Under the pieces are notes generated by a model. The model did not search any database. It had not been told where the DNA came from and worked only from the letters and a program-made list of their open reading frames with translations. Below are positions 18,268 through 59,582 of a stretch of DNA of 64,000 nucleotides, piece after piece. The stretch is taken from positions 186,001-250,000 of the IMG/VR virus record IMGVR_UViG_3300047157_000197. The stretch is one strand, 5' to 3'. The stretch's first letter is position 1, and each line of letters opens with the position of its first letter. Position numbers and translations under genes: made by a program.

Positions 18268-18324
18268 CTCCTGTTTTATATATATTCATATATTTATATG
18301 TAATAACAATTAAAAAGGAGAGTT

Positions 18325-18519
18325 ATGGCAAATACAAAATTAACAACAGTAAAAATTATTAAAGATATTTATTCAAAGTTTAAAAGAATTTCATTCGATT
18401 CGAACATTACATTACAAAAATTAGTAAATCGTTCAGTAGATAAATACATTGAAGATGATTCATTTAGAGCAGAGATTAATGATTATCAAAATTTAAAAGA
18501 AAGCGGTTCCGCTTTCTAA
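18325..18519 (+). CDS. ribbon-helix-helix-like DNA-binding protein
   Basis: KLTTVKI strand followed by two predicted helices (TLQKLVNRSV). Confidence 0.5.
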   Translation: MANTKLTTVKIIKDIYSKFKRISFDSNITLQKLVNRSVDKYIEDDSFRAEINDYQNLKESGSAF

Positions 18520-18536
18520 AAAAAGAAAAAAACAAA

Positions 18537-18671
18537 ATGAGTTCAAATGCAAGTGGTCCACAATTAAATTCACTGAGAAACAATTTCAATGAGTTAGTTT
18601 CTAAAAAGAAAATGGTGGGTAGTACAAAAAGAGTTATCTGGCAATCTAAGAGAAGATTCGGAAACATCTAA
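18537..18671 (+). CDS. small basic hypothetical protein (44 aa, not in ORF track)
   Basis: MSSNASGPQLNSLRNNFNELVSKKKMVGSTKRVIWQSKRRFGNI* fills the intergenic gap. Confidence 0.45.
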   Translation: MSSNASGPQLNSLRNNFNELVSKKKMVGSTKRVIWQSKRRFGNI

Positions 18672-18691
18672 AATTTTTAAAATAAAGGTTA

Positions 18692-20074
18692 ATGACAAAA
18701 AAGAAAACAATTCTACTATTATCTGATGATTTAAGAATGTCATCAGGTATTGCAACAGTTTCTAAAGAAATAGTATTAGGAACATTAGATAAGTTTCATT
18801 GGGTTCAATTAGGAGCCGCAGTAAACCACCCTGAAAAAGGTAAAGAAATAGATTTAGGAAACGATGTTCGTAAAACAACAGGCATCAAAGATGCTTCTCT
18901 TAAAATCATTCCTTGGACTGGGTATGGAGATGCTAATATTCTAAGAGAGTTGATAATGAGACACCAACCTGATGCAATATTACACTTCACAGACCCAAGA
19001 TATTGGAGATGGTTGTATGATATGGAGGCAGAAGTTAGACAAAATATTCCAATCTTATTTTATCATATATGGGATGATTTACCAGACCCTGATTACAACA
19101 GAAATTACTACGAAAGTTGTGATTGGTTAGGTTGTATCTCAAGACAAACTTATGGTATCGTAAGTAGAGTTGGTAATATAGAATCAGAAACAATAAAAAC
19201 TCTTGAAGATTGGCAAGTTGATTATGTACCACATGGAATCAATTCTAATACATACAAACCAACAGAAGTTCCAAGTGATTTTAGAAAACAAGTTACAGGT
19301 GGTAAAGATTATAAGTTTGTTCTATTTTGGATGAATAGAAATATCAAACGAAAACAACCATCAGATGTTATTTGGGCATTCAAGAAATTTGTTGATGGAT
19401 TACCAGAAGAAGATAAAAATGAAGTTTGTTTAATAATGCATACTGCACCTAAAGATAAAAATGGAACAGATTTGTTTGCAGTAGCTGATAAAATAGCACC
19501 TGGTTTAGATATTAAATTTTCAACAGAAAGAATAAATCAAAAAGAACTTAATTACATTTATAATATTGCAGATTGTACAATAAATATTGCAGGTAACGAA
19601 GGATTTGGATTAGTAACTGCTGAATCAGTAATGGCAGGAACCCCAAGTATCGTAAACGTTACAGGTGGATTACAAGACCAATGTGGATTCAAGGTAGATG
19701 GTAAATATCTAACTGCAGAAGATTATAAGGAAATTGGTTCACTTCACAATTATAGAGATTGGGAAGATAAAGTAACTCATGGTGAGTGGGTAAAACCAGT
19801 TTGGCCAAGAGTTCAAACTATGGTTGGTTCTATTCCAACTCCATATATCATAGATGATAAAGTAGATGTGTATGATGTTGCAGATGCAATTAAATATTGG
19901 TATGATAAAACACCTAAAGAAAGAACTAAAGCTGGATTAAAAGGTAGAAAAGAATTTTTAGGTGAAATGGGATTAAATGCTAAAAACCAAAATAAACAAA
20001 TGGCAGATGGTATTTTAAAAACAATCAAAAATTTCAAACCAAAGAAAAAGTTTAACGTTTATAAACTTAGGTAA
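18692..20074 (+). CDS. GT-B (GT4-like) glycosyltransferase
   Basis: SGIATV, VPHGI, NRNIKRK, NEGFGLVTAES. Confidence 0.88.
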   Translation: MTKKKTILLLSDDLRMSSGIATVSKEIVLGTLDKFHWVQLGAAVNHPEKGKEIDLGNDVRKTTGIKDASLKIIPWTGYGDANILRELIMRHQPDAILHFTDPRYWRWLYDMEAEVRQNIPILFYHIWDDLPDPDYNRNYYESCDWLGCISRQTYGIVSRVGNIESETIKTLEDWQVDYVPHGINSNTYKPTEVPSDFRKQVTGGKDYKFVLFWMNRNIKRKQPSDVIWAFKKFVDGLPEEDKNEVCLIMHTAPKDKNGTDLFAVADKIAPGLDIKFSTERINQKELNYIYNIADCTINIAGNEGFGLVTAESVMAGTPSIVNVTGGLQDQCGFKVDGKYLTAEDYKEIGSLHNYRDWEDKVTHGEWVKPVWPRVQTMVGSIPTPYIIDDKVDVYDVADAIKYWYDKTPKERTKAGLKGRKEFLGEMGLNAKNQNKQMADGILKTIKNFKPKKKFNVYKLR

Positions 20075-20352
20075 TGAGTAAACCAATCTTTATAGTTAGA
20101 TTACCAGGTTATTGGAATCCTAAACAATTTGATATATCAAGAAAAGCAATTTACGATAGAAAAGAACTATCAACGGATTATCATGTATTGGTATTATCTG
20201 ATAACGAAATTGAAACTATAAGATTTGAATGCTATAACTCACCCCATGAATCAGAAAAGTTAGAAGAAATAACAAAACTAACTCAAATATCAATCGAAAG
20301 ATGTTTGAGAAACGAAGAAGAAAACCGATTAAGAGAATTAGACAATGAATAA
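20074..20352 (+). CDS. hypothetical protein
   Basis: translationally coupled ORF. Confidence 0.55.
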   Translation: MSKPIFIVRLPGYWNPKQFDISRKAIYDRKELSTDYHVLVLSDNEIETIRFECYNSPHESEKLEEITKLTQISIERCLRNEEENRLRELDNE

Positions 20353-21616
20353 ACCAATATTAGTATTTCAGGCACCAATAGCAACTAGAAGTGGTTATGG
20401 TGACCATTCAAGAGATATCTTGAAATCATTATTTGAATTAGATAAGTACGATGTTAAAGTTGTACCAACACGATGGGGAAATACCCCACAAGACCAAATC
20501 AATCCACAAACTGAGTTTGGACAAAAGATATTACAAAATATCGTAACTCAATTAAATACACAACCAGATATTTTTATACAAGTATCAGTTGCTAATGAAT
20601 TTAAAAAAGTTGGTAAATATAATATTGGAATTACTGCAGGAGTAGAAACAACATTAGCTCCTCAAGAATTTTTACAAGGTTCAAATCAAATGGATTTGAT
20701 AATTACTCCATCTGAATTTACAAAAGAGGTATTGATTAGAACTTCTTATACACAAATGGATAAAAATACTAACCAAAAAGTAGGAGAATTAAAAGTACAA
20801 AAGCCAGTTGAAGTTTTATTCGAAGGAGTAAATATCGAAATTTTTAATAGTGATACTAAAGGTACGGATATTCTTGAATCTGTTGATACAGATTTTAATT
20901 TCTTATATGTTGGTCATTGGTTACAAGGAGATTTAGGTCATGATAGAAAAGATACAGGTATGATGATTAAAACATTTTGTACAGTTTTTAAATCATTACC
21001 AAAAAATCAACAACCTGGTCTTATACTAAAAACCTCATCAGCAGGATTTTCCGTAATGGATAGAGAAGAAATTTCTAAAAAGATTAAAGATATAACAAAA
21101 GAGTTTGGTGATAAATGCCCTCCTATTCATTTAGTATTTGGAGATTTATCCGAATCAGAACTAAACTCACTATACCATAGTAAAAAAGTAAATGCAATGA
21201 TAATGTTTACCAAGGGAGAAGGATATGGTAGACCACTTGCAGAATTTGCTACAACAGGTAAACCAATAGTAGTTTCTAATTGGAGTGGATTTAAGGATTT
21301 CTTACCTAAAGAACATACAGTTTACTTAGAGGGTGAACTAAAAGAGGTTCATCAATCAGCACAAAATAAATTTTTACTAAAAGATTCGAAATGGTTTTAT
21401 GTAGATTATTCAAAAGCTGCAAGTAAGATTTTTGATGTATATAAAAATTATAAAAAATATCTAAAACAATCAGAAGGATTGAAAACAAATATTAATAAGA
21501 ATTTCACATTAAATAAAATGACAAGTAAATTAGGTGAAATACTTGATAAATATGTTAAGATTCAACCACAACCAAAGCATGTTGAATTAAAATTACCAAC
21601 TATTAAAAAACTATAA
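20345..21616 (+). CDS. GT-B (GT4-like) glycosyltransferase
   Basis: SGYG, DRK, GEGYGRPLAEF. Confidence 0.88.
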   Translation: MNKPILVFQAPIATRSGYGDHSRDILKSLFELDKYDVKVVPTRWGNTPQDQINPQTEFGQKILQNIVTQLNTQPDIFIQVSVANEFKKVGKYNIGITAGVETTLAPQEFLQGSNQMDLIITPSEFTKEVLIRTSYTQMDKNTNQKVGELKVQKPVEVLFEGVNIEIFNSDTKGTDILESVDTDFNFLYVGHWLQGDLGHDRKDTGMMIKTFCTVFKSLPKNQQPGLILKTSSAGFSVMDREEISKKIKDITKEFGDKCPPIHLVFGDLSESELNSLYHSKKVNAMIMFTKGEGYGRPLAEFATTGKPIVVSNWSGFKDFLPKEHTVYLEGELKEVHQSAQNKFLLKDSKWFYVDYSKAASKIFDVYKNYKKYLKQSEGLKTNINKNFTLNKMTSKLGEILDKYVKIQPQPKHVELKLPTIKKL

Positions 21617-22149
21617 TGGCAAATTTTACAAGACAATATACTAAATTTTTAAAACCTGAGAGAAGAATACCTCGTAGTGAGATTAGACCAAGGAATATCT
21701 ATCGTATAACTACATATAAAGGTGGTAATCCTCCAACTAAATCAGCTGAGGAATCACGATATGTTTTTGTAATAGGAATTCTTGATAAAAAAATACATTG
21801 TATAAAAATAAATCCAATCAATCCACTACACTTTACACAATTGATTGGTAAATTAAGAGATAAAAGATTACCACTAAGTTCAGATTTACGATTAGAATTA
21901 ATGTTAAAGAAATTTGATAGAACTGGTAATTCACTTTTTGATGGATATATTAAAAATAATAAGAATGTGTATCGTAAAGACTTTAATAATTACAGAACTT
22001 ATTTTTTAGATAAAATACAGAATGTATATGAAATTAGATTTGAACAAGATATATTAGAAAATCTTTTTGGAGAAAAAACAACTACATCTGAAAAAAGAGA
22101 AATATTAAAAGAAGAACAATCAGAAATAGATTCACCGAATGACAATTAG
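21616..22149 (+). CDS. hypothetical protein, weakly reminiscent of T4 gp2 DNA end protector
   Basis: basic protein with VFVIG...CIKIN...YRTY pattern; similarity by eye only. Confidence 0.3.
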   Translation: MANFTRQYTKFLKPERRIPRSEIRPRNIYRITTYKGGNPPTKSAEESRYVFVIGILDKKIHCIKINPINPLHFTQLIGKLRDKRLPLSSDLRLELMLKKFDRTGNSLFDGYIKNNKNVYRKDFNNYRTYFLDKIQNVYEIRFEQDILENLFGEKTTTSEKREILKEEQSEIDSPNDN

Positions 22150-22762
22150 TTACGCAATTACAGTTTGTAATGAATTAGAAGAAATAACAAAGTTATTAAA
22201 CTTTTTACAAACTAATATTAGAAAGGAAGATGAGATAGTAATTCAATATGATGAATCATCTGTTACAGATGGAGTTATGGATTACTTAAAGTTAATGAAT
22301 TCAATGCATGAAAATCATAAAGTAATTGGATTCCCACTTAATAAAGATTTTGCAACATTTAAAAATAATCTTAAATCTCATTGTAGTAAAGATTATATCT
22401 TTCAAATAGATGCCGATGAAATTCCACATGAATTTTTAGTAGAATATGTAGGACAAGTACTTGATGAAAACCCAGTCGATATTGTATTCGTACCAAGAGT
22501 AAATACGGTAAAAGGGTTAACACAACCACATATTGATAAATGGAAATGGAATGTAAATGAAAAGGGTTGGGTAAATTTTCCTGATTATCAAACAAGAATT
22601 TACAAAAACACACCAGATGTAACTTGGATGAACAAAGTACATGAAACAATTACAGGATATAATACATTTTCTAATTTTCCTGCAGAGGAACAATGGAGTT
22701 TGTATCATCACAAACAAATAAATAAACAAGAAAAACAAAACGAATTTTATGAAACAATTTAA
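22139..22762 (+). CDS. GT2-family glycosyltransferase
   Basis: ISYAITVCNE, YIFQIDADE (DxD), FPDYQTR. Confidence 0.85.
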   Translation: MTISYAITVCNELEEITKLLNFLQTNIRKEDEIVIQYDESSVTDGVMDYLKLMNSMHENHKVIGFPLNKDFATFKNNLKSHCSKDYIFQIDADEIPHEFLVEYVGQVLDENPVDIVFVPRVNTVKGLTQPHIDKWKWNVNEKGWVNFPDYQTRIYKNTPDVTWMNKVHETITGYNTFSNFPAEEQWSLYHHKQINKQEKQNEFYETI

Positions 22763-23048
22763 ACCATTAGGGGATAGAGTTTTAATTAAACCTATCAAAC
22801 AAGAAGAAACTAAAACAAAAAGTGGTATCATTATTTCCGAATCAATGACACAATCACAAAAAGTGAATGGTGAAGTTATAGAAATTGGTACAGGTATATT
22901 TTCTCAAAGTGGAGAGCGAATCCCTATGACAGTAAAAAAAGGTGATATTGTATTGTATGAAAAAGGACAAGGTACAAATGAAATTAAAATAGATGATGAA
23001 AAATATCTTCTATTTAATGAACATCAACTAATAGGAATAGTAAAATGA
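22749..23048 (+). CDS. groES: co-chaperonin GroES
   Basis: KPLGDRVLIK, TKSGII, VKKGDIVL. Confidence 0.92.
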   Translation: MKQFKPLGDRVLIKPIKQEETKTKSGIIISESMTQSQKVNGEVIEIGTGIFSQSGERIPMTVKKGDIVLYEKGQGTNEIKIDDEKYLLFNEHQLIGIVK

Positions 23049-23899
23049 AAAAGATATTAGTAACTGGAGGAGCTGGTTTTATAGGAACCAACCTTATAAA
23101 AAGATTATTATCAGAGGGACATCGTGTTGTCTCTTTAGATAATTATGAAACAGGTACAAAAGATAATCATGTTGAAGGGTTTGTTAAATATATAAATGCA
23201 GATATTGAAACTATTGAATACATTTCAGGAGATTTTGATTTAGTGTATCATTTAGCTGCATTAAGTAGAATACAACCTTCATTTGAAAATCCAACAGAAA
23301 CATTCAGAGTTAATGCAAAGGGAACTGAGGCAGTATGTGAATGGGCAAGAGCAAAAGGAATTAAAGTAGTATATGCGGGTTCATCTTCAAAATGGCATGA
23401 CCCATCTATCTCACCTTATGCTATGTACAAATATTTAGGTGAAGAAGTTTGTAAATTATATAGAAAAACTTATAAGTTAGATGTAGAGATATGTAGATTT
23501 TATAATGTATATGGACCAAATGAAGTAATAGAAGGAGATTGGGCTGCAGTAATTGGTATATGGAGAAGACAAGTAAGAGATAGTGAAAAGATTACAATTG
23601 TAGGTGATGGTGAACAGAGAAGAGATTTTACTCATGTTACGGATATTGTTGATGGATTATATAAGGTAGGTTTTGGAAATGAAAAACATGAAGATGCATG
23701 GGAACTTGGTTGTGGTGTAAACTATTCAATCAATGAAATGTTCGAGATGTTCCAAACAAAATTTACAGAAATAGAATCAACTTATTTACCAGACCAATTG
23801 GGTAATTATCGAAAAACTCTTAGAGAAAATAATGATACATTGTCAAGATTAAATTGGAAACCAGAAGATAGATTAAATGATTATATTCAATCTTTATGA
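23045..23899 (+). CDS. NAD-dependent nucleotide-sugar epimerase/dehydratase
   Basis: GGAGFIG, YAMYK (YxxxK), RFYNVYGP, RDFTHV. Confidence 0.92.
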   Translation: MKKILVTGGAGFIGTNLIKRLLSEGHRVVSLDNYETGTKDNHVEGFVKYINADIETIEYISGDFDLVYHLAALSRIQPSFENPTETFRVNAKGTEAVCEWARAKGIKVVYAGSSSKWHDPSISPYAMYKYLGEEVCKLYRKTYKLDVEICRFYNVYGPNEVIEGDWAAVIGIWRRQVRDSEKITIVGDGEQRRDFTHVTDIVDGLYKVGFGNEKHEDAWELGCGVNYSINEMFEMFQTKFTEIESTYLPDQLGNYRKTLRENNDTLSRLNWKPEDRLNDYIQSL

Positions 23900-24729
23900 T
23901 AGGAATAATAGGACAGGGTTTTGTTGGTAATGCAGTTTATCAAAAGTTTAAAAAGTATTATGATGTTGTAACAAATGATTTAGATGAAACTAAATCTACT
24001 GCAACCTTAAGTAATTTGGTAATGATTTGTGATACTATATTTTTATGTTTACCAACTCCTATGAAAAAGAGTGGTGAGTGTGATTTATCTATATGTGAAA
24101 ATGTATTGAGTGAAATAGATTTACTTGTAGATAATTTAGAACAATTAAGAACGATAGTAATCAAATCAACGATTCCACCAGGTACAACTGATAATTGGAA
24201 TCAAAAATACGATTCACTTAATATTGTATTTAATCCAGAGTTCTTAACTGAGAGAAATGCAGTAGAAGATTTTGAAAATCAAGATAGAATTATTTTAGGT
24301 GGTCCAAGACCAACAACAACTGAATTAAAACAATTATTTTCAAAAGTATTCCCATCGGCACATATAATCAAAACAGATTCAACTCATGCAGAGATGGTAA
24401 AGTATTTAACTAACGCATTTTTATCTACCAAAGTATCGTTTGCTAATGAAATTTATCAGATATGTAAAGTAGTAGGTGCTGATTACGATAAAGTAATTGA
24501 ATATGCAACTCAAGATGAAAGATTGGGAACATCTCATTGGAATGTACCAGGTCATGATGGAGATTTTGGATTTGGTGGACATTGTTTTCCAAAAGATTTA
24601 TCTGCACTTTTACATTTATCTGAAAAGTTTGGAACAACTAATAATGTATTATGTGCAACACAAGAAACTAACAACAATGTTAGAAAAAATAGAGATTGGG
24701 AACAAATGAAAGGAAGAGCAGTATCATGA
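23896..24729 (+). CDS. UDP-glucose/GDP-mannose dehydrogenase family protein (short, lacks C-terminal domain)
   Basis: GQGFVG, IKSTIPPG, FNPEFL, AEMVKY..N, FGGHCFPKD. Confidence 0.88.
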   Translation: MIGIIGQGFVGNAVYQKFKKYYDVVTNDLDETKSTATLSNLVMICDTIFLCLPTPMKKSGECDLSICENVLSEIDLLVDNLEQLRTIVIKSTIPPGTTDNWNQKYDSLNIVFNPEFLTERNAVEDFENQDRIILGGPRPTTTELKQLFSKVFPSAHIIKTDSTHAEMVKYLTNAFLSTKVSFANEIYQICKVVGADYDKVIEYATQDERLGTSHWNVPGHDGDFGFGGHCFPKDLSALLHLSEKFGTTNNVLCATQETNNNVRKNRDWEQMKGRAVS

Positions 24730-26338: not shown

Positions 26339-27698
26339 AATTAAATTAGTTATATTCGATTTAGATGGGGTTCTTGTAGAAGCAAAGAACATTCATTATG
26401 ATGCACTTAATGATGCATTGGGTAAGGAATATGCAATTAGTTGGAACGAACACTTATCTACTTACGATGGATTAAAAACCAATCAGAAGTTAGATATGTT
26501 AACCGAAAGAAAAGGATTACCTACATCATCTCATACAGATATTTGGATTCATAAACAAAAACTAACTTTAGAAAAACTAAAACAATTAGAACCAAGTGAT
26601 GTTCTTATTGAATTAATGGATAGTTTAGTTGAACGAGGATATAAAATAGCAGTATGTTCAAACTCAATTAGAAAAACAGTTCTAACTGTACTTTCAAAGT
26701 TGGGTATTATGGAATTTATGGATTACATTATTTCAAACGAAGATGTTGAAAATAGTAAACCACATCCTGAAATGTATTGGAATGCAATATCAAAGATGAA
26801 ATGTTTACCAGAGGAAACTTTGATAGTAGAAGATTCACCTTATGGATTACTTGCAGCAGCTCGTTCTAAATCACACATACTTAGAGTTAAGAATACAAAA
26901 CAAACTAATTTAAAAAACATAAATAACAAATTAAAACAAATAGAAATGGGAGAACAACAATCAACACCAGCATGGAGAGATGAAACTTTAAATGTTTTAA
27001 TTCCAATGGCAGGAGCAGGAAGTAGATTCCAACAAGCAGGATATACTTTTCCAAAACCACTTATTGAAGTAAAAGGAAAACCTATGATTCAAGTAGTGGT
27101 AGAAAATCTAAATATCAAAGCAAACTTTATCTATGTAGTACAGAAAGAACATAGAGAAAAATATAACTTAGATACTTTGTTAAATTTAATCACACCAAAT
27201 TGTAAAATTGTTGAAGTAGATGGTATTACAGAGGGTGCAGCTTGTACTGCATTACTTGCTAAAGAATATATAGATTCGGAAAATCCTTTATTCTTCGCTA
27301 ACTCAGACCAGTTCGTAGAATGGGATTCAAATGAGTTCTTATATAAAATGAACGAAACAAATGCAGATGGTGGGATTGTATCATTTAGAGCAACACACCC
27401 AAAGTGGAGTTTTGCTAAGATAGATGAACAAGGATTAGTAACTGAAGTTGCTGAAAAGAATCCTATATCAGATATTGCAACAGTTGGATATTACTATTGG
27501 AAGAATGGTTCTGATTTTGTAAAGTATGCAGAAGAAATGATTGAAAAGATGTTCAGAGTAAATGGAGAATTCTATGTTTGTCCTGTTTTCAATCAAGCAA
27601 TTGAAGATGGAAAAGAGATTCGTACATTTGATATTCCTAAGATGTGGGGATTGGGAACACCAGAAGATTTGAAAGAATATTTGGAAAATTATAAATAA
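26328..27698 (+). CDS. HAD phosphatase fused to sugar-phosphate nucleotidyltransferase
   Basis: N-half FDLDGVL, KPHP, VEDS; C-half IPMAGAGSRF, PKPLI, NSDQ, LGTPEDL. Confidence 0.88.
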   Translation: MADKIKLVIFDLDGVLVEAKNIHYDALNDALGKEYAISWNEHLSTYDGLKTNQKLDMLTERKGLPTSSHTDIWIHKQKLTLEKLKQLEPSDVLIELMDSLVERGYKIAVCSNSIRKTVLTVLSKLGIMEFMDYIISNEDVENSKPHPEMYWNAISKMKCLPEETLIVEDSPYGLLAAARSKSHILRVKNTKQTNLKNINNKLKQIEMGEQQSTPAWRDETLNVLIPMAGAGSRFQQAGYTFPKPLIEVKGKPMIQVVVENLNIKANFIYVVQKEHREKYNLDTLLNLITPNCKIVEVDGITEGAACTALLAKEYIDSENPLFFANSDQFVEWDSNEFLYKMNETNADGGIVSFRATHPKWSFAKIDEQGLVTEVAEKNPISDIATVGYYYWKNGSDFVKYAEEMIEKMFRVNGEFYVCPVFNQAIEDGKEIRTFDIPKMWGLGTPEDLKEYLENYK

Positions 27699-27711
27699 TT
27701 TCGTATATTTG
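27680..27711 (+). promoter_or_regulatory. Bacteroidota-type promoter
   Basis: TTTG-N20-TATATTTG. Confidence 0.7.
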
Positions 27712-27720
27712 TAAGTAGAT

Positions 27721-31590: not shown

Positions 31591-31593
31591 TAT

Positions 31594-34254: not shown

Positions 34255-34764
34255 TTGAAGTACGCTACATTAAATGTATTTAAAATATTCATTTTATGTA
34301 TCTTTGTTTTATTACCGACAGGTTCTAATGAGATACATACAAGTGATGACAACCTCATTAAAGTCGGTGAAGTGACCAACGAAATCCGAATGGGACAGTT
34401 TGCAGGTAACCGAAACCTAGCAGTTGGTGTCAAGAATATCCTCGAAGAATTATTAATGGATTTAGATTATGATTTATCAGACCAAGCATCTACGCAAATA
34501 AATGTAAGATTGGTCTTTTTTGATATAAAAAATATTGGAACATCGGTTGCGGTGTTTCATAAAGATGTTTCATTAACGCAAATTATTGCGATTGGTGAAT
34601 TAGAAGTCAAGGGAAAAGTTAAAAAACGTACTACTCAAAAAGGAACGAGTAAAACAATTTCTACTAGTACTCTTGTAGTTGCACAAGACGGAACATTTAA
34701 CCAACAAACAGCCTCAATTGCTTTAAAGAAAGTATGTGAGGCAATTATTAAGGATTTATTATGA
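34255..34764 (+). CDS. exported CsgG-like protein (short paralogue of 37825)
   Basis: hydrophobic N-terminus; NLAVGVKNILEELL vs RVGLGVTNMVIEYL; FNQQTASIALKKVCE vs FRQSAIGVTTRKALE; TTG start after AGGAG. Confidence 0.5.
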   Translation: MKYATLNVFKIFILCIFVLLPTGSNEIHTSDDNLIKVGEVTNEIRMGQFAGNRNLAVGVKNILEELLMDLDYDLSDQASTQINVRLVFFDIKNIGTSVAVFHKDVSLTQIIAIGELEVKGKVKKRTTQKGTSKTISTSTLVVAQDGTFNQQTASIALKKVCEAIIKDLL

Positions 34765-36410: not shown

Positions 36411-36428
36411 TAAAAAGGAAACAGAAAA

Positions 36429-36807: not shown

Positions 36808-36945
36808 ATGTTAAATAGTATATTTTTAGTGTCAGTTGGATTTATTACAATGTGGTTAGTATGTAAGTACGAAATAACAAAATGTAAAATTGGTAAATCA
36901 TGTGATTGTAAAGAATGTAGAGAAAAAAGGAGAGCAAAATTATGA
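36808..36945 (+). CDS. small membrane protein with Cys-rich tail (45 aa, not in track)
   Basis: MLNSIFLVSVGFITMWLVCKYEITKCKIGKSCDCKECREKRRAKL*. Confidence 0.4.
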   Translation: MLNSIFLVSVGFITMWLVCKYEITKCKIGKSCDCKECREKRRAKL

Positions 36946-37244: not shown

Positions 37245-37262
37245 TTTAAATAAAGGAGAAAA

Positions 37263-38547: not shown

Positions 38548-40323
38548 ATGAGAAAACTACTATCGATACTTGCATTTTGGTTCATAACTAATCTTAGTTA
38601 TGGACAAACATTCACACAGACATTTGTAGATAGATGTACTGGTGAAGTACAAGTTGTTACCGCTAATTTTACAAGTGGTTCTGCTATCGTATCCTTTTAC
38701 AACGAAGCTAAATTATTCACATACACACAATATACTAATGGTGAACTCCAACAATGGTTAGTTCAGAAATATGCATGGTGGGCTGCACTATCCCCATGTT
38801 CATCTGCGAGTAACGCAACCAACAACGCTAATAATACTGCAAACAACGCAACCAATAATACCAATTCAGGTTCAAGTGGTTCTAGTGGTGGTGGAGATAG
38901 TGGTTCAAGTGGTTCATCAGGTGGTAGTGGAGATAGTGGTGGTGGAAGTGGAGATTCAGGCGGTGGAGGTTCTGATGGTGGAAGTGGAGATTCTGGTGGC
39001 GGTGGTTCTGATGGCTCTGATGGTGGTGGTGGAGATTCTGATGGAGGAGGAGGCGATTCCGATGGCGGGGGTGGTGATTCCGATGGTGGCGGTGATTCCG
39101 ATGGTGGAGATAGTGATGGTGGGTCTGGTGATTCCGATTCTGATGGTGGAGATAGTGATGGTGGAGATAGTGATTCTGATTCTGATGGTGGAGATAGTGA
39201 TTCCGATTCCGATAGTGATTCTGATTCCGATAGTGATTCTGATTCCGATAGTGATTCTGATTCTGACTCTGATGGCGATAGTGATGATGATTCTGATTCT
39301 GACTCTGATGGCGATAGTGATGATGATTCTGATGGGGATTCTGATGATGATTCCGATGGAGATAGTGATGATGAATCTGATGATGATTCCGATAGTGATG
39401 AAGATTCTGATGAATCTGATGAAGATAGTGAAGAAAGTGATGAGGAAGATAGTGAAGAAGAATCCGATGAAGAAGAAAAGGAAGAGGAAGAAGAAAGTGA
39501 TGAAGAAGAGGAAGAAGAAGAAAAAGAGGAAGAAGAGGAAGAAGACGATGAAGAAGAAGATGAGGAAGAAGAAGATGAGGAAGATGAGGAAGATGAGGAA
39601 GACGAAAAAGATGAAGAAGATGAGGAAGAAGAAGAAGAAAAGAAAAAGAAATTTATGCCAATAGTATTGAAGGCAGATGTAATGTCAATGCAAGCTCTAA
39701 CAAGAGAATACAACCAAGTTCTTGCAATTGGAGCATCACAAGCATCAATCTATGGTGATATAACAAATACAGCAACTTTACAAGTATATGATAACTTAAA
39801 ACAAGTTGGGTTATCATTGGGTAGAAGTAAAGTAAGTTTGAATGAAAATTATCAAGTAACTTGGGTAGATGGAGCAAACGTATCTTATATGAGAAATTAT
39901 CAGATGAACTCAACTACATTATCTCTCAGTAGAATGAAACCAATGGGTAAGTATGGAACTGTTGGATTGGGTGTTAGTTATTCATTTATGTTTGGTAAAG
40001 ATGCTCTTGGAAATACAATGCCAAAAATGGGTACTATGGGATATAATGTTCTTTATACAAATATGGTAAAAATAAATGATAGAATAATGTACACACCAGC
40101 ATTGATTGGTGCACAAAACCCATTATCTTATACAGAAAAAGTTGAGGGGTTCGATGCCTTTTCATCAACATCAAAAGATTTTATAGGAATCCTTGCAAAT
40201 TCCTTTACAATACAATTAACAAAAAGTTTTTCGTTTAATGCAGGTTGGACGATAATTTATAGTAGTAATGAGTTTGTTCCAATTATGAATTCGTTTATGA
40301 TAGGAGCAAAGTTACCCTTTTAA
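38548..40323 (+). CDS. secreted protein: small N-domain, Gly/Ser/Asp/Glu low-complexity stalk, C-terminal outer-membrane beta-barrel
   Basis: signal ending SYG-Q; ~280-aa GS/SD/DE tract; amphipathic strands ending in ...GAKLPF. Confidence 0.7.
   Translation: MRKLLSILAFWFITNLSYGQTFTQTFVDRCTGEVQVVTANFTSGSAIVSFYNEAKLFTYTQYTNGELQQWLVQKYAWWAALSPCSSASNATNNANNTANNATNNTNSGSSGSSGGGDSGSSGSSGGSGDSGGGSGDSGGGGSDGGSGDSGGGGSDGSDGGGGDSDGGGGDSDGGGGDSDGGGDSDGGDSDGGSGDSDSDGGDSDGGDSDSDSDGGDSDSDSDSDSDSDSDSDSDSDSDSDSDGDSDDDSDSDSDGDSDDDSDGDSDDDSDGDSDDESDDDSDSDEDSDESDEDSEESDEEDSEEESDEEEKEEEEESDEEEEEEEKEEEEEEDDEEEDEEEEDEEDEEDEEDEKDEEDEEEEEEKKKKFMPIVLKADVMSMQALTREYNQVLAIGASQASIYGDITNTATLQVYDNLKQVGLSLGRSKVSLNENYQVTWVDGANVSYMRNYQMNSTTLSLSRMKPMGKYGTVGLGVSYSFMFGKDALGNTMPKMGTMGYNVLYTNMVKINDRIMYTPALIGAQNPLSYTEKVEGFDAFSSTSKDFIGILANSFTIQLTKSFSFNAGWTIIYSSNEFVPIMNSFMIGAKLPF
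38810..39650 (+). repeat. coding low-complexity tandem repeat (GGDSD, DS, DDSD, EEED)
   Basis: degenerate GATTCY/GATAGT/GAAGAA codon repeats. Confidence 0.9.
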
Positions 40324-40332
40324 GGAGATAAT

Positions 40333-43799: not shown

Positions 43800-43823
43800 A
43801 CATAACTATATATTTATAGTAGT

Positions 43824-44471: not shown

Positions 44472-44527
44472 ATAATTATTTACAAATACTTTTATACTTA
44501 TATAGTATAGAACATTAAGGAATTAAT

Positions 44528-46083: not shown

Positions 46084-46133
46084 AATACCCTTATTTATAC
46101 TCATTATAAACTACAAAAATAATCCACTTTTTA

Positions 46134-46165
46134 TTAGGTTTTCTCGTTTATTTTCACTATATTTA
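46134..46165 (+). promoter_or_regulatory. Bacteroidota-type promoter variant
   Basis: TTAG-N20-TATATTTA; 46146-46177 identical to 61575-61606. Confidence 0.7.
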
Positions 46166-46185
46166 CTATGTAAATAATCTAAAGT

Positions 46186-46575
46186 ATGACTGAGAAAGAA
46201 GTCCAAAAAATAATCAACGAAGTTTATCCAAAGATAGAGAAACATTATGGTTACTCTAAATTTATATCAGAGTGTACTCCTTATGTAGAAACTCATTATA
46301 ATATCTATGCTAGATATAGTGGTGAACCTGAAGCTAGAGGTGAACAAGATGATTGTCATGCTGAATTTGATAGAACTGATAATAGTATTGTTATCTATTG
46401 GCCTAATATGAAAAATAGAAAACATATAATTCAAACTTTAGTTCACGAATACCAACATTACCTACAATCACCATCTTGGTTCAAAAGATATTATGATATG
46501 GGATATGATTATGGTAATCATCCTTACGAAGTTCAAGCGTATGGTGAAGAAAAGAATTGGGTTCTTTTTAAATAA
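46186..46575 (+). CDS. zincin-like metallopeptidase
   Basis: TLVHEYQHYLQ (HExxH), HPYEVQA third-ligand motif. Confidence 0.7.
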   Translation: MTEKEVQKIINEVYPKIEKHYGYSKFISECTPYVETHYNIYARYSGEPEARGEQDDCHAEFDRTDNSIVIYWPNMKNRKHIIQTLVHEYQHYLQSPSWFKRYYDMGYDYGNHPYEVQAYGEEKNWVLFK

Positions 46576-46603
46576 TATATTTATACACAAATAGGAGAAC
46601 ATT

Positions 46604-47476: not shown

Positions 47477-47526
47477 GTTCGGTATGATTATTGAACTATA
47501 TACTAAATAAATCTATATTTATAAAT

Positions 47527-48465
47527 ATGAGACACCTAATATACATACTGTGGGTGTTGTTACTTACATCTTGTGGTACAACATACCAACTATCAACAAT
47601 CAATCACGACCCAATCTATACATCTGATGGAACAGAAATCCAATTTGATGTAGTAGATAACGAATTTCAATTAGCAAGAAAGTTCAGAACAGATGATAAA
47701 TTCCGATGGGATTTTGCACAATTTGCAATGAAACAAGACCTAAGATGGAACTATGATTTCTATTTCAATAATAGAATGTACAGAAGTCCATATGCATCAC
47801 CATTTGATTTCTATTGGAACTCACATAACTATTGGTGGAATTGGGCAACTAATTCACATTTCAATATGGGATTCAATCATTGGGATAGATTTGGATTCTA
47901 TGGATATGGTAGTTCTTTTGGATATTATGGATTCAATAGATATGGTTGGAACAATGGTTACTATGGTAATGGTTGGGGATACAGACAGAGAATGAATGAT
48001 TATGCATGGAGAAATAGAAATAGAACAAATACAGCTTATGTAGTTGGTAGAAGAAGTTCAAACAATGTTGTAGTTGGTAATAGAACTAACGTAATAAAAG
48101 ATAGAGTTATTATTAATAGAAACAAACCTAGACTGGTTGTTGATAAGGATGTAGTTATTGATAGAGCAATTATCAAACTTAAACGAAATAACAACAACAT
48201 CAGAGTTTACGAAAACCCTAATAACGTTCCTAATAAAATTATAATAAGAAATAATAACAACAGTAAACCTGTTAGAAATTATAATAGACCAGAGAACAAT
48301 AGAAATAACTTTAACAGAAATAATAATACAAGACCAAGTAGAACTTACACACCTCCATCAAGAAGTTCTTCACCACCTGTGATTAGTAGACCTCCAACAA
48401 GAAGTTCTAATCCACCTGTGATTAGTAGAGGTAGTGGTGGTAGTAGAGGTTCTGTAAAGAATTAG
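47527..48465 (+). CDS. lipoprotein with aromatic/Gly-rich core and Asn/Arg/Pro/Ser-rich disordered tail
   Basis: lipobox LLTS-C after ATG 47527; repeated SS.PPVISR at the C-terminus. Confidence 0.65.
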   Translation: MRHLIYILWVLLLTSCGTTYQLSTINHDPIYTSDGTEIQFDVVDNEFQLARKFRTDDKFRWDFAQFAMKQDLRWNYDFYFNNRMYRSPYASPFDFYWNSHNYWWNWATNSHFNMGFNHWDRFGFYGYGSSFGYYGFNRYGWNNGYYGNGWGYRQRMNDYAWRNRNRTNTAYVVGRRSSNNVVVGNRTNVIKDRVIINRNKPRLVVDKDVVIDRAIIKLKRNNNNIRVYENPNNVPNKIIIRNNNNSKPVRNYNRPENNRNNFNRNNNTRPSRTYTPPSRSSSPPVISRPPTRSSNPPVISRGSGGSRGSVKN

Positions 48466-48510
48466 TTAATATTAATTTCTTTATATTTATATAGGTAAAG
48501 GAAATACCAT

Positions 48511-49977: not shown

Positions 49978-49979
49978 TA

Positions 49980-50300
49980 ATGATAAAACTTACATCTATA
50001 CTTAACGAAGGAAAGATATTATTACAATCTAAAGATAAGAATGCTGAATTACCATCAGTATTTCCTGATTTTTTAGTACACGCTAAAGAACATAATGTAA
50101 TACAATTTATTCCAAGAAAATCAGTTGATTTAGATAAAATAGACCAATTGGGTAATATATCAAAAGATGATATCACTAAACAATTAGCTAGTTGGGCTGA
50201 AAAGAAAACAAAAATCAAATATAAACCATTTAACGATTTCCAAGGAGCAGGATATGGAATTCGTATAGATATGGATTACATTGGAAAAAAACTTAAATAA
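49980..50300 (+). CDS. putative virion internal protein
   Basis: MIKLTSILNE leader. Confidence 0.5.
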   Translation: MIKLTSILNEGKILLQSKDKNAELPSVFPDFLVHAKEHNVIQFIPRKSVDLDKIDQLGNISKDDITKQLASWAEKKTKIKYKPFNDFQGAGYGIRIDMDYIGKKLK

Positions 50301-50310
50301 GGAGAATCAA

Positions 50311-50799: not shown

Positions 50800-50856
50800 A
50801 TTTTTATATATATAAGTAATAAAGGTTACAACTCACATTTAAGGAGGAGTAATACA

Positions 50857-51187
50857 ATGATTGATAAAGAATTAGAGAAAGCAAATACCAGTCATCCAGC
50901 AGATACAAACGGTGATGGTAAAGTATCTAAAGAAGAACACGATATGTATCTTGAATTCAAGAGAAAAGAACTTGAAGATAAAGATGCTATGAGAGATGCA
51001 CAACGTAGAATGGCATGGTTTGCCTTAATTGGTATGTTACTATATCCATTCGCAGTTGTAATCGCTTCAGTAAGTGGTGTGGAACAAGCATCAACTATAC
51101 TTGGTGATATGGCAAGCTACATATTTTGTTTCAGTTGCAGCAATAGTTGCAGCATTCTTTGGTACACAAGCGTACTCAAGTAAATAA
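50857..51187 (+). CDS. EF-hand-loop membrane protein, frameshifted near 51114
   Basis: DTNGDGKVSKEE loop plus a TM helix; removing one A gives a second TM (ATYFVSVAAIVAAFFGTQAYSSK*). Confidence 0.6.
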
Positions 51188-51206
51188 AGTTATAAAATTA
51201 TAAAAA

Positions 51207-56693: not shown

Positions 56694-56753
56694 AAATTAG
56701 AAAAGCCTATCAAAAAATTTTAATATACTATACTTATATTAAAGAGGATTACT

Positions 56754-57317
56754 ATGGAAAATAAAAAAGAAAAAATATTCCCTAATTATGACCCAACTCA
56801 AGATTTATCTTTAGCTGGTAAAAATCGAAGAATGAAACGAGGATTAGGTGCAAAACCACTTCTCGAATCAGAGATAAAGGAAGTTCAAAAGAAAGCTCGT
56901 TCAGCAATGGAAGCAGCTAGATTATTGGGAGTATCTTACAACACTTATAAAAAATACGCAAGAAAATATGGTATCTTTGAAGATTTAAAGAACCCTGATG
57001 GAACTGGTATTCGTAAAGGATATAATATCAAACGAGGAAAATACTCTTTAGATGATATTTTAAAAGGGAAATATCCTGATTACCCTGTTTGGAAACTTAA
57101 ACAAAGATTACTCAATAATGGTTATATGTTAGAAAAATGTAACAAATGTGGATTTGAAGAAAGAAGAATCACAGACCATAAAGTTCCACTTGTTTTAGAT
57201 TTTCTTGATGGAGATAGAAAGAATCATAATTATGAAAATTTAAGAATGTTATGTTTTAATTGTTCCTTTCTAATTAATGGAAATTTATCAGGCCCTAAAA
57301 AAGAATACGAATATTAG
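56754..57317 (+). CDS. HTH plus HNH-like zinc-binding protein (catalytic His apparently absent)
   Basis: EAARLLGVSYNTY; CNKC...LDFLDGDRKNHNYENLRMLCFNC. Confidence 0.7.
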   Translation: MENKKEKIFPNYDPTQDLSLAGKNRRMKRGLGAKPLLESEIKEVQKKARSAMEAARLLGVSYNTYKKYARKYGIFEDLKNPDGTGIRKGYNIKRGKYSLDDILKGKYPDYPVWKLKQRLLNNGYMLEKCNKCGFEERRITDHKVPLVLDFLDGDRKNHNYENLRMLCFNCSFLINGNLSGPKKEYEY

Positions 57318-57345
57318 GATAATTAAATAATTTTTTGTATATTTG
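57314..57345 (+). promoter_or_regulatory. Bacteroidota-type promoter
   Basis: TTAG-N20-TATATTTG. Confidence 0.7.
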
Positions 57346-57360
57346 TAGAAATAAATAAAT

Positions 57361-57684: not shown

Positions 57685-57690
57685 AAAAAA

Positions 57691-57722
57691 TTAGGAAATT
57701 AAACAAATTTTTCGTATCTTTA
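57691..57722 (+). promoter_or_regulatory. Bacteroidota-type promoter variant
   Basis: TTAG-N20-TATCTTTA. Confidence 0.6.
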
Positions 57723-57760
57723 TACGATAAATACATATATATAAATATAAAACAGAAATT

Positions 57761-57973
57761 ATGAGTAAATTTTTCGAAGTTACAGTAGAAGTGGTTGTTG
57801 CCACACTTAAAAATGGTAAAGACAAAAAAGTAAAAGAAATCTACTTAGTAGATGCACAATCAGTAACAGAAGCTGAAGCAAGAACCGTAAAGGATTTTGA
57901 ACAAAGTGGAGTTCAGATTGACTACAAAGTAAGTGGAGCAAAAGAAAGTAGAGTACTAAGAGTAATTGAGTAA
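57761..57973 (+). CDS. DUF4494-like protein (Bacteroidota family)
   Basis: FFEV.V...GKDKKVKEIYLVDAQSVTEAEAR. Confidence 0.7.
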   Translation: MSKFFEVTVEVVVATLKNGKDKKVKEIYLVDAQSVTEAEARTVKDFEQSGVQIDYKVSGAKESRVLRVIE

Positions 57974-58239
57974 TGAGTAAAGAACCTCAAATACAAAAAG
58001 AAGAAGTTAAAACAAAAGTTGCAAAGAGAGTACCACCTGGAGATAGGTGGACTCCTCTTTCCAACTCTACCGTAATGTTGGATTCTTTAACTGATGTACT
58101 TGAATTTATTTATCAAGATACAGGTAAAACACAATTTTATATGGATGCTAAAGAAGGATTTGTATATGTTGTTGATACTGAAGAAGTGGTGATAGAACCA
58201 GAACCAACAAAAAGATGGAGTTTATACGGTGAAGAATAG
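57973..58239 (+). CDS. hypothetical protein
   Basis: translationally coupled ORF. Confidence 0.6.
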   Translation: MSKEPQIQKEEVKTKVAKRVPPGDRWTPLSNSTVMLDSLTDVLEFIYQDTGKTQFYMDAKEGFVYVVDTEEVVIEPEPTKRWSLYGEE

Positions 58240-58439
58240 AACAAAAAAATTTATACTAAAGTTAGTGTTTTTATATGCTACATTATTTCCCTCATCAGGT
58301 CTTATAACAGAACTACATGATTATAGTTCTAAAAAAGCAGAAGATACCGATGAGCATATGTTTATTTAAAAGTACTATATTTATAGTAGTGATGTAATAT
58401 ATCACAAAATCAATTAATTAATTAAAAAATAAAAAAATC

Positions 58440-58751
58440 ATGCAAAACATTTTAATTATTTTAGCTATCCTTGCAATAGGAGCTGCAGTTTATTATTTCG
58501 GATTCTACAAACAAGGTAAAATCAACGATAGAGATGGGGATTTTATTCCTGATGAAATCGAAGATGCAGTAGAAGATGTAAAGAAAGTTGCTAAAACTGT
58601 AAAAAGAAGAGCTAAAAGAGTAAAAGAAGAACTTGGTGATGTTGCAGATGCAATTAAAGAGGTTGGTAAACAATCTAAAGATGTTGTAAAAGCAGCAAAA
58701 GGAAAACCAAGAGCAGGTAGAAAACCTAGAGCTTCTAAGAAAAAGAAATAA
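58440..58751 (+). CDS. membrane-anchored protein with DxDxD loop and basic tail
   Basis: N-terminal TM, DRDGDFIPD, Lys/Arg-rich C-terminus. Confidence 0.6.
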   Translation: MQNILIILAILAIGAAVYYFGFYKQGKINDRDGDFIPDEIEDAVEDVKKVAKTVKRRAKRVKEELGDVADAIKEVGKQSKDVVKAAKGKPRAGRKPRASKKKK

Positions 58752-58763
58752 GGAGTACTATTT

Positions 58764-59582
58764 ATGAGTTTAAAATCATTGATTACCGAAACAGTATTAA
58801 TTGATTCAATGTATGACATCGAATCTGAATTACTGAATATAAAAGAAGCTTTATTAGAACAAATGATTATCGAGGGCGTTGATGACCCTGGAATACTTAA
58901 ATGTGTTTTCATGGCAGGAGGACCTGGTTCAGGTAAATCCTATACTGCCATGGAGATTTTCGGTATTGATAAAAGATTAAAACAATCCTTTGCAATGACT
59001 GGTCTTAAATCAGTTAATTCAGATTCAGCATTTGAAAAAGGATTAAAGGATAATGGTATTGACCCAAAGAACTTAGCAAAAATTGAAAAAGAAGATGCTG
59101 AACTTTGGGATAAAATTTCTAATAATGATGACTCTATTAGAAATAATGCAAAACGATTAACTCAACTTCAAAAGAAATTTTATGAAGCTGGTAGATTGGG
59201 TATGATTATCGATGGTACTGGTCATGTATATAGTAAAATTCAAAAGAATAAGAAATATGCAGAATCACTTGGTTACGATACCTACATGATATTTGTAAAT
59301 ACTTCACTTGAAGTAGCACAAGAACGAAACTTAAATAGAGAAAGAGTTTTAGATGCTGACCGATTAGAAAAATCTTGGAAAGATGTTCAGAACAACTTGG
59401 GTAAGTTCCAAAACTTATTCGGTGGTAACTTTAGGATAGTAGATAATACAGTTTATAAACCTATCGGAAAACAAGTACAGAAAGCAGTAAATGCTTTTGT
59501 AAGAAAGAAAGTGTATAATCCAATCGGAAAGAAATGGATTCAAACTGCAAGAGCACTTAAAAACAAAAACTTCATTAAATAA
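58764..59582 (+). CDS. zeta-toxin/AAA_33-like P-loop kinase with N-terminal extension
   Basis: MAGGPGSGKS, VNSD, IIDGTG, FVNTSLEVAQERN..R. Confidence 0.8.
   Translation: MSLKSLITETVLIDSMYDIESELLNIKEALLEQMIIEGVDDPGILKCVFMAGGPGSGKSYTAMEIFGIDKRLKQSFAMTGLKSVNSDSAFEKGLKDNGIDPKNLAKIEKEDAELWDKISNNDDSIRNNAKRLTQLQKKFYEAGRLGMIIDGTGHVYSKIQKNKKYAESLGYDTYMIFVNTSLEVAQERNLNRERVLDADRLEKSWKDVQNNLGKFQNLFGGNFRIVDNTVYKPIGKQVQKAVNAFVRKKVYNPIGKKWIQTARALKNKNFIK

Follow-up and report, generated by a model that had tools for sequence, protein, structure and literature searches.

The stretch of DNA analysed here (hereafter the window) comprises 64,000 nucleotides of a 275,970-bp phage genome, and contains on its left-hand side a family B DNA polymerase gene, a processivity-factor-like gene, a clamp-loader unit and a PD-(D/E)XK nuclease gene, followed further downstream by a unit including a DegT aminotransferase gene and by many genes of the putatively late class, among them an HNH endonuclease-like gene. 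Two classes of intergenic promoter-like motif can be recognised over the genome as a whole. The first, P1, is Bacteroidota-like (ATTwGG-N17-TTTCGTATATTTG/A, 40 copies) and precedes replication genes, namely those for PolB, clamp, clamp loader, primase, an SbcC-like protein, thymidylate synthase and thymidylate kinase, while the second, P2, is a -10-only motif (TATATTTATA, 47 copies) with no information upstream of taTATATTTATAta, and precedes the major head protein (capsid), portal, sheath, adaptor, baseplate and fibre genes, as well as many unknown genes. It is in this sense of gene content that the P2 class is called late below, the timing of expression being inferred. Table 1 collects the promoter-like sites and Shine-Dalgarno (SD) sites within the window.

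Table 1 Promoter-like sites and SD sites in the window (position 1 is the first nucleotide of the window; scores are those of the position weight matrix for the motif concerned).
Position	Strand	Feature	Downstream gene or start	Remarks
50..83	+	P1 promoter-like site (ATTTGG-N17-TTTCGTATATTTGT)	104	score 42.1; intergenic; gene without SD
4822..4855	+	P1 site	family B DNA polymerase gene	no SD
7412..7445	+	P1 site	processivity-factor-like gene at 7478	no SD
13354..13387	+	P1 site	clamp-loader unit (13410-16780)	no SD
16780..16813	+	P1 site	PD-(D/E)XK nuclease gene at 16836	no SD
18287..18302	+	P2 site CATATATTTATATGTA (late-type, -10-only)	18325	score 16.0
18315..18320	+	SD AAGGAG	18325	4 nt before the ATG
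27679..27712	+	P1 site	unit 27721-34054, including the DegT aminotransferase gene	no SD 4-mer at -18..-4 in the unit; not in the first-pass annotation
34750..34754	+	SD AAGGA	34761	6 nt before the ATG; not in the first-pass annotation
36415..36419	+	SD AAGGA	36429	
36927..36932	+	SD AAGGAG	36942	
37253..37258	+	SD AAGGAG	37263	
40322..40327	+	SD AAGGAG	40333	
43807..43822	+	P2 site	43824	score 16.2; ends 5 nt before the ATG; probably a leaderless or near-leaderless mRNA
44517..44521	+	SD AAGGA	44528	P2 site at 44491-44506
46133..46166	+	degenerate P1 site with the conserved TTTACTATGTAAATAA leader	46186	score 17.0
46574..46589	+	P2 site	46604	score 15.8
46593..46597	+	SD AGGAG	46604	
47512..47527	+	P2 site	47527	score 16.8; TATATTTATA ends 3 nt before the ATG; probably leaderless
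48480..48495	+	P2 site	48511	score 18.8
48498..48502	+	SD AAGGA	48511	
50299..50304	+	SD AAGGAG	50311	
50841..50847	+	SD AAGGAGG(AG)	50857	strongest in the window, -11.1 kcal/mol
56744..56747	+	SD GAGG	56754 (HNH endonuclease-like gene)	P2 site at 56727-56742
57313..57346	+	P1 site	57361	
57690..57723	+	P1 site	57761	
58374..58389	+	P2 site	58440	54 nt before the start; A-rich leader, no SD
58750..58755	+	SD AAGGAG	58764	
61856..61889	+	P1 site	61923	further degenerate P1 copy at 61562-61595

The first-pass annotation of the window had claimed that 13 putative late genes between 18310 and 58770 carry AGGAG/AAGGA-type sequences, whereas nine genes in units driven by Bacteroidota-type promoters have only A/T-rich leaders, and this observation is confirmed. 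All 13 listed starts carry AGGAG/AAGGA/GAGG-type motifs 4-9 nt upstream and none of the nine does, although some corrections to the list are necessary: the gene at 572 is an internal gene of a P1 unit rather than promoter-proximal, the start at 34255 (TTG) is uncertain, and six further SD-led genes in the same interval (23045, 24726, 34761, 37527, 43614 and 49980) had been omitted. Of the three exceptions that had been listed (43824, 47527 and 58440), the first two have the P2 motif so close to the ATG as to leave no room for an SD.

Scoring of SD sites by promoter class over the whole genome, which had been set beforehand as a test of the idea, showed that the dichotomy is not confined to the window. 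Using starts chosen without reference to SD, AGGA begins at -16..-9 about 6 times more often than expected, and an SD 4-mer or longer at -18..-4 occurs in 9/145 (6%) genes of P1 units but in 56/181 (31%) genes of P2 units (Fisher p=9.7e-9), the transcription units having been assigned from motifs alone. For promoter-proximal genes the corresponding counts are 1/34 and 20/43 (p=1.6e-5), and for downstream genes 8/111 and 36/138 (p=9e-5). Composition does not explain the difference, since internal-ATG controls give 10.1% and 8.2% in the two classes. It must be remembered, however, that only about a third of late-unit genes have an SD, so that this is an enrichment and not a rule; five of the six virion genes annotated here do carry one, the exception being the tail-fibre gene, which is an internal gene of its unit.

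These motifs have several of the properties expected of SD elements. They are sub-words of AAGGAGG, complementary to the CCUCC core of the 16S 3' tail, with a median duplex energy of -7.3 kcal/mol for the 56 late genes that have them, and the spacer to the start codon peaks at 5-11 nt. For promoter-proximal genes their position is fixed relative to the ATG (8.2±2.1 nt) but not relative to the promoter (24±39 nt). They are also kept in orthologous leaders: the SD before the capsid gene is present at -13..-7 in 41/56 distinct relatives with 53-92% protein identity. More broadly, 80 capsid-flank loci in relatives have 43.8% SD (909 genes) whereas 80 polymerase-flank loci have 8.4% (1113 genes; Mann-Whitney p=1e-13), and in one complete relative (G006) the counts are 7/125 against 22/130 (p=0.005), the lower being that of the early class.

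As to the host, which was not observed directly, a SusC-like gene in the phage is 63-73% identical to those of marine Flavobacteriales (Polaribacter, Robiginitalea and Flavobacteriaceae), supporting the assumption that it is a member of the Bacteroidota. A Polaribacter MAG sample, taken to represent the putative host clade, has SD on only 1.0% of 199 genes, while host rpsU carries GAAAGGAGGTG and host bS21 has Tyr54. When P1 is compared with the Bacteroidota housekeeping promoter (TTG ... TAnnTTTG), TAnnTTTG is exact in 13/40 sites, TAnnTTTA is found in 17/40 and neither in 10/40, while the upstream element is TTTGG or TTTGT in 16 sites and TTAGG in 22, these figures resting on motifs alone without mapped start sites; an extra invariant TTTCG is phage-specific.

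The first-pass annotation had suggested that the genome be searched for bS21, on the grounds that some large Bacteroidota phages encode this protein, and one is indeed present, 1.4 kb upstream of the capsid gene, beside the scaffold and capsid genes and behind a P2 motif. It matches PF01165 with 46.8 bits (cut-off 27) and PDB bS21 chains at E=3e-6, the best solved matches being bS21 of the E. coli type. It keeps the rRNA-binding N-terminal part, but at the columns of Tyr54 and Ile55, the two residues that contact the anti-SD tail in Bacteroidia bS21 (Tyr54 by stacking on A1534), it has Arg and Glu; the Arg is found in the phage protein and in all 120 listed family members (121/121 sequences). 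Its C-terminal part is also unlike the short, weakly basic one of Bacteroidia-type bS21, having 56 aa and a net charge of about +12 against 22 aa and +1..+3 in five marine Flavobacteriaceae (the relatives have a median of +7), and in this it resembles bS21 of SD-using bacteria.

A natural contrast is provided by a cultured relative, Flavobacterium phage vB_FspM_immuto (NC_055915.1; 160 kb), which has a 51% identical capsid protein, the same head-gene order, TATTTATA motifs before its late genes and a P1-like TTTCGTATATTT, and which infects a Flavobacterium. It has no bS21 anywhere in its complete genome, and SD on only 2/46 late-region genes.

Several published systems bear upon these findings. 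In Bacteroidota the anti-SD tail is held in a pocket formed by bS21, bS18 and bS6; Tyr54 and Ile55 contact the tail, and the Bacteroidetes C-terminal part is unusually non-basic (PMC7797042). In F. johnsoniae, the bS21 mutation Y54A, C-terminal deletion or depletion raises translation of SD-led reporters (PMC9976891), and loss of bS21 releases the anti-SD tail (PMC13000457). The rpsU autoregulation by bS21-lacking ribosomes in this species involves the same ribosomal pocket and the same logic as would apply here, in that weakening the bS21-tail contacts frees the anti-SD and favours SD-led mRNA, but there a single host gene has an extended 13-bp SD (-19 to -23 kcal/mol as calculated here for marine relatives), whereas here dozens of phage genes have ordinary SDs, and the proposed trigger is a foreign bS21 variant rather than the absence of bS21. 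bS21 exchanges easily between ribosomes, and in Francisella tularensis swapping bS21 variants on the ribosome changes which mRNAs are translated (PMC9578407), although that is a bacterial paralog system in an SD-using host with no sequestered anti-SD involved. The large freshwater Bacteroidetes phages of Chen et al. 2022 (PMC9723584) also have bS21 beside core virion genes, and it was proposed that the protein enters host ribosomes and favours phage mRNAs late in infection. [quoted passage not shown] Lastly, P2 resembles the -10-only TATAAATA promoters of T4-type late transcription in being an AT-rich element with no -35 element, lying before virion genes of a T4-like module, but its sequence is TATATTTATA, which resembles the host -7 element TAnnTTTG, and no gp55/gp33 homologue was identified, with 46 unannotated P1-unit proteins of 110-270 residues remaining outside the scan. 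No report of the SD dichotomy itself was found in the literature searched.

The explanation that seems best able to accommodate these results, though it can be held only tentatively, is that the phage runs two expression programmes. In this view early and replication genes, lying behind P1 and having A-rich, SD-less leaders like those of host genes, would be translated by ordinary host ribosomes. Because bS21 exchanges readily on ribosomes, phage bS21 would then replace host bS21 on part of the 30S pool, whereupon the anti-SD tail would no longer be held in its pocket and these ribosomes would initiate preferentially on SD-led late mRNAs. The interpretation in the first-pass annotation, that the phage may unmask the anti-SD late in infection so as to give a translational early-to-late switch, is partly supported. 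What the analysis itself establishes is the existence of the two motif classes, the enrichment of SD sites together with its spacing and conservation, the lack of SD sites in the host clade, and the bS21 gene with its residue differences; that the phage protein enters host ribosomes, that the tail is released and pairs with the SD sites during initiation, that SD-led mRNAs gain in translation, and when any of this would occur, are all inferences from sequence, the metatranscriptome contigs showing presence only. There are moreover difficulties for a simple form of the idea. Four relatives whose bS21 keeps Tyr at column 54 still have SD-rich late loci (33-69%), so loss of Tyr54 is not required, while other relatives (L113, L138, L178 and LR756508) have an adjacent bS21 but few SDs. 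The raw link between bS21 adjacency and SD fraction (p=0.0013) rests on few independent events, and with the three phylogenetic pairs that were available the test was not significant. Two thirds of late-unit genes have no SD, and as the phage bS21 gene is itself late, the first late mRNAs would meet unmodified ribosomes.

Other explanations must be considered, all of them less likely. It could be that the late SD sites are functional but are read by host ribosomes that lack bS21 for other reasons, for instance because host rpsU expression stops after host shut-off or because a phage factor removes host bS21, in which case phage bS21 would have a different job or be dispensable. Ribosomes lacking bS21 do exist in F. 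johnsoniae and favour SD-led mRNA (PMC9976891, PMC13000457), and this reading would sit well with the relatives having Tyr54-type bS21 and with a further relative, L136, that has 59% SD but no bS21 found in its 48-kb record. It is nevertheless thought unlikely, since in F. johnsoniae such ribosomes work poorly on SD-less mRNAs (PMC9976891), which most late genes here would produce, since the bS21-free phage immuto has so few late SDs, and since the residue changes in bS21 are invariant across the listed family members, which argues for a selected function at that site. Still less probable is that the motifs are neutral leftovers of an ancestral T4-like virion module that evolved in SD-using hosts. 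The module is indeed T4-like (phrog major head, portal and sheath matches, and capsid matches to many T4-like phages), and only a third of late genes keep a motif, but before the capsid gene it stays at fixed spacing while the surrounding intergenic sequence diverges, many late genes with an SD have no known T4 counterpart, and its near-absence from late genes of immuto, which nests inside an SD-rich clade, suggests that it decays when not kept.

Equally improbable is that the purine-rich element acts without the anti-SD, whether as a binding site for a phage translational regulator or for protein bS1, as an mRNA stability element, or as part of the late initially transcribed region. Leaders are certainly very short, with the P2 motif 13-39 nt from the ATG, and in a few genes the element starts 0-5 nt after the promoter element; however, the consensus is exactly the complement of CCUCC, its spacing to the ATG is canonical, its position is tied to the ATG and not to the promoter, and internal genes of late units, which have no promoter nearby, also carry it at 26%. 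That the host is not SD-blind at all, the pattern reflecting only different expression levels in an SD-using host, appears very unlikely. The closest solved bS21 matches are proteobacterial, but against this must be set the identity of the SusC-type receptor, the Bacteroidota-like TAnnTTT(G/A) element of P1, an upstream adenine pattern at -12, -11 and -3 that matches the host-clade sample, the lack of an SD in 94% of early-unit genes, and the fact that the nearest cultured relative infects Flavobacterium.

This genome links three things that were known separately, namely that Bacteroidia ribosomes hide the anti-SD behind bS21, that removing the bS21 contacts makes them respond to SD sites, and that phages carry bS21. 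The link is a sequence signature that can be counted, consisting of SD sites concentrated on late genes together with a phage bS21 without the sequestering residues, and it turns a vague "ribosome hijack" idea into one open to precise test with existing F. johnsoniae reporters, purified ribosomes and cryo-EM, immuto serving as a natural control. The pattern could also improve start-codon calling and temporal-class prediction in Bacteroidota phage genomes. The furthest-reaching possibility, which on present evidence is rather less likely than not, is that a phage-encoded, non-sequestering bS21 converts part of the SD-blind Bacteroidia ribosome pool into SD-reading ribosomes, giving the phage a private translation channel for its late mRNAs; this would be the first concrete function for the most common phage-encoded ribosomal protein, and a natural case of virus-made specialised ribosomes.

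The 275,970-bp virus record from which the window is taken (bases 186,001-250,000) is rated complete by CheckV; it is 30.5% G+C, and 326 of the 327 genes called lie on one strand, no alternative genetic code having been used. A megablast search with an 8-kb part of the window against deposited phages gave no match, but a search with the capsid protein places the phage in a large family of uncultured aquatic T4-like phages, for which the nearest cultured relative is Flavobacterium phage vB_FspM_immuto, with 51% capsid identity. Gene calls and transcription units were obtained using a simple purpose-made caller and motif scans, and the statistics that follow should be read with this in mind. Features of the genome that are located by coordinate in this part of the analysis are collected in the table.

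Coordinates of features in the window and in the remainder of the genome
Feature	Window position	Genome position	Observation
Near-identical direct repeat at the two genome ends		1-2024 and 273,871-275,970	About 2.0 kb, 96.6-99.3% identity; holds several P1-like sites; either a terminal repeat or an assembly overlap of variants
tRNA cluster (small)		15766-17402	Glu-TTC, Ser-TGA, Ala-TGC and one irregular call
PF01165 (bS21) match		116,788-116,946	46.8 bits
Acidic protein between bS21 and the capsid gene		117256-118413	385 aa, extremely acidic (long E/D runs); probably the scaffold; counterpart in phage immuto annotated as 'DNA polymerase phi-like'
SusC-type TonB-dependent receptor	10051-12759		CarboxypepD_reg + Plug + barrel; an unusual host-derived outer-membrane gene in an early unit
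Radical SAM proteins	15533-16780 and 52460-53503	87276-88724	Three in one phage genome, one with a SPASM domain
Sugar-modification cluster	18692-34054		Two GT4 glycosyltransferases, a HAD-nucleotidyltransferase fusion and a DegT-type aminotransferase; split between a P2 unit and a P1 unit
Protein with low-complexity tract	38548-40323		Bacteroidota-type signal peptide, then a graded low-complexity tract of about 300 aa (N-rich, then SG, DS, DE and E runs), then a beta-rich C-terminal domain ending KLPF; explains the G+C 0.39 and skew 0.39 bin and the long ORFs open in other frames
Late promoter element close to the ATG at 43824	43807-43826		5 nt from the ATG; candidate leaderless mRNA
Late promoter element close to the ATG at 47527	47512-47529		3 nt from the ATG; candidate leaderless mRNA
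Sub-family of P1 sites with conserved leader	46133-46185 and 61562-61613	24639, 162416, 172172	Followed by TTTACTATGTAAATAAtTAATAACAc...; may be a shared operator or leader RNA
Metatranscriptome contigs	46000-51900		5,901-base stretch; contigs in four seawater RNA libraries

Counts of intergenic k-mers revealed two motifs that are almost absent from coding sequence. The first, P1, is ATTwGG-N17-TTTCGTATATTTG/A and has 40 copies, all of them intergenic; its 3' half matches the Bacteroidota -7 element as TAnnTTTG in 13 sites and as TAnnTTTA in 17, while its 5' element is TTTGG or TTTGT in 16 sites and TTAGG in 22. The second, P2, is taTATATTTATAta, which has no conserved upstream element and is present in 47 intergenic copies. 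Units behind P1 hold replication and nucleotide genes (family B polymerase, clamp, both clamp-loader subunits, primase, an SbcC-like nuclease, thymidylate synthase and thymidylate kinase), whereas those behind P2 hold virion genes (major head protein, portal, tail sheath, head-tail adaptor, baseplate wedge and tail fibre), and P1 is therefore assigned as the early or replication class and P2 as the late class. However, inside the window most P2 genes have no known function, so that in their case the label “late” rests on the shared motif; the contigs found in RNA libraries show no transcript starts, strand or levels and indicate only that the sequence is present. A late sigma factor of the gp55 type was not found among the ten proteins scanned.

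The observation made in the first-pass annotation, namely that putative late genes carry SD sites while genes behind host-type promoters have only A/T-rich leaders, is confirmed, and every start listed there behaves as described. When gene starts were chosen without reference to SD sites, AGGA was found to begin at -16..-9 about six times more often than expected, and an SD word of four or more bases at -18..-4 occurs in 9/145 P1-unit genes and 56/181 P2-unit genes (Fisher p=9.7e-9). For promoter-proximal genes the corresponding counts are 1/34 and 20/43, and for downstream genes 8/111 and 36/138. The contrast is not compositional, since internal ATGs of the two classes give 10.1% and 8.2% and base composition is the same. 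The spacer peaks at 5-11 nt, and in promoter-proximal genes the SD is fixed relative to the ATG (8.2±2.1 nt) but not relative to the promoter (24±39 nt), implying that it is a start-codon signal rather than part of the promoter. P1 leaders are adenine-rich at -12, -11, -5 and -3, and SD-bearing late genes also keep A at -3 in 82% of cases. Of the exceptions that had been listed, two (43824 and 47527) have the P2 element so close to the start codon that they are probably leaderless.

The same pattern is seen in relatives. In 80 capsid-flank loci 43.8% of 909 genes have an SD, as against 8.4% of 1113 genes in 80 polymerase-flank loci, the per-locus medians being 45% and 8% (p=1e-13). A complete relative designated G006 (252.6 kb, 73-75% identity) has the same P1 and P2 motifs and gives 7/125 against 22/130, while the SD before the capsid gene is kept in 41/56 distinct relatives even though the rest of the leader diverges.

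As regards the host, the SusC-type receptor gene carried by the phage is 63-73% identical to genes of Polaribacter, Robiginitalea and other marine Flavobacteriales. In 240 kb sampled from the best-matching Polaribacter genome, 1.0% of 199 genes have an SD word, and the upstream adenine pattern equals that of the P1 genes of the phage. The rpsU genes of four such genomes (the marine Flavobacteriaceae loci L097-L100) carry the extended SD GAAAGGAGGTG, and their bS21 has Tyr54, which is the published signature of SD-blind Bacteroidia ribosomes (PMC7797042, PMC9976891); one Tenacibaculum genome has extra bS21 copies, of which one (L101) keeps Tyr54 but has no SD. An SD-using host, which had been named in advance as one of the circumstances that would refute the proposal, is therefore not what was found.

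A search of the full genome for bS21, as the proposal called for, did find such a gene. It lies at genome 116764-117072, encodes 102 aa and sits behind a P2-like site between head genes, 1.4 kb upstream of the capsid gene and separated from it by an acidic scaffold-like gene, and its product belongs to a family of more than 300 metagenomic proteins. A tblastn search with this bS21 against the collection of deposited phages gave no match, so no cultured phage carries this bS21 family. When aligned with host-type bS21, the phage protein and all 120 listed relatives have Arg at the Tyr54 column and mostly Glu at the Ile55 column, these being the two bS21 residues that contact the 16S 3' tail in the F. 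johnsoniae ribosome (PMC7797042). In the phage protein the corresponding residues are R59 and E60. The C-terminal part is 56 aa with a net charge of about +12, whereas in the hosts it is 22 aa with +1 to +3; a weakly basic C-terminal part is the other Bacteroidetes-specific trait (PMC7797042). The best solved matches are E. coli-type bS21, the F. johnsoniae chain scoring lower. The other two pocket proteins, bS18 and bS6, are not encoded by the phage. When it was asked whether phage bS21 genes themselves avoid SD sites, the start codons of many relatives could not be fixed.

A natural contrast is provided by phage immuto, which has the same head-gene order and TATTTATA motifs before its late genes, but has no bS21 in its complete genome and an SD on only 2/46 late-region genes; on the capsid tree it nests inside an SD-rich, bS21-bearing clade. 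Similarly, a ten-member clade for which no bS21 was found in the records, each of which covers only about a tenth to a third of a genome, mostly has few SDs. Across 40 relatives the raw late SD fraction is 50% where a bS21 gene is adjacent and 23% where it is not (p=0.0013), but no reliance is placed on this figure, because adjacency is not the same as presence (G006 has its bS21 about 100 kb from the capsid gene), because the negatives are fragments that are only 11-30% complete, and because just three independent pairs exist on the capsid tree, so that a test on independent pairs has no power. The wider tree shows two or three concordant contrasts and several discordant rows. The relatives L113, L138, L178 and LR756508 have bS21 but few SDs (although for LR756508, at 484 kb and 41% GC, this is weak evidence, as the codon model used called only 10 genes, none with an SD), while L136 is the reverse, with 59% SD and no bS21 found in its 48-kb record. 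It might be supposed that Arg54 is the key change, but this is rejected as a general rule, since four relatives keep Tyr54 and are nevertheless SD-rich; the feature that all phage bS21 in the group share is a basic C-terminal part, with a median net charge of +7. The comparative link is therefore suggestive only.

The interpretation put forward in the first-pass annotation, that the phage may unmask the anti-SD late in infection, is partly supported: its key prediction, of a phage ribosomal factor acting on the anti-SD pocket, is borne out by sequence. A distinction must be kept between the difference in SD sites between the two promoter classes and the presence and residue differences of the phage bS21, which the sequences themselves show, and the mechanism, for which entry of the phage protein into host ribosomes, release of the tail, any gain to SD-led mRNAs and the timing of expression are all inferred. 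Phage bS21 and specialised ribosomes in Bacteroidia were each known already. Chen et al. (2022) proposed a late-stage ribosome takeover by phage bS21, but concluded that their proteins, which unlike the present one keep an aromatic residue at position 54, act like host bS21, and they did not analyse phage leaders, while McNutt et al. (2023) speculated about phage bS21 exchange; no report of an SD dichotomy in Bacteroidota phages was found in the literature searched.

The reasons for suggesting such a mechanism are as follows. In F. johnsoniae, the bS21 mutation Y54A, loss of the C-terminal helix, or depletion of the protein raises translation of SD-led reporters, and loss of bS21 frees the tail (PMC9976891, PMC13000457). 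In other bacteria the SD-anti-SD helix runs between the two bS21 helices (PMC13000457), and bS21 exchanges easily on assembled ribosomes (PMC9578407). The late SDs of the phage are ordinary in strength (median -7.3 kcal/mol), whereas host rpsU has -19 to -23 by the same calculation, and on this view they should therefore be too weak to compete with an intact pocket. By inference, a phage bS21 that fills the bS21 site without holding the tail would make such SDs usable while keeping the mRNA channel intact.
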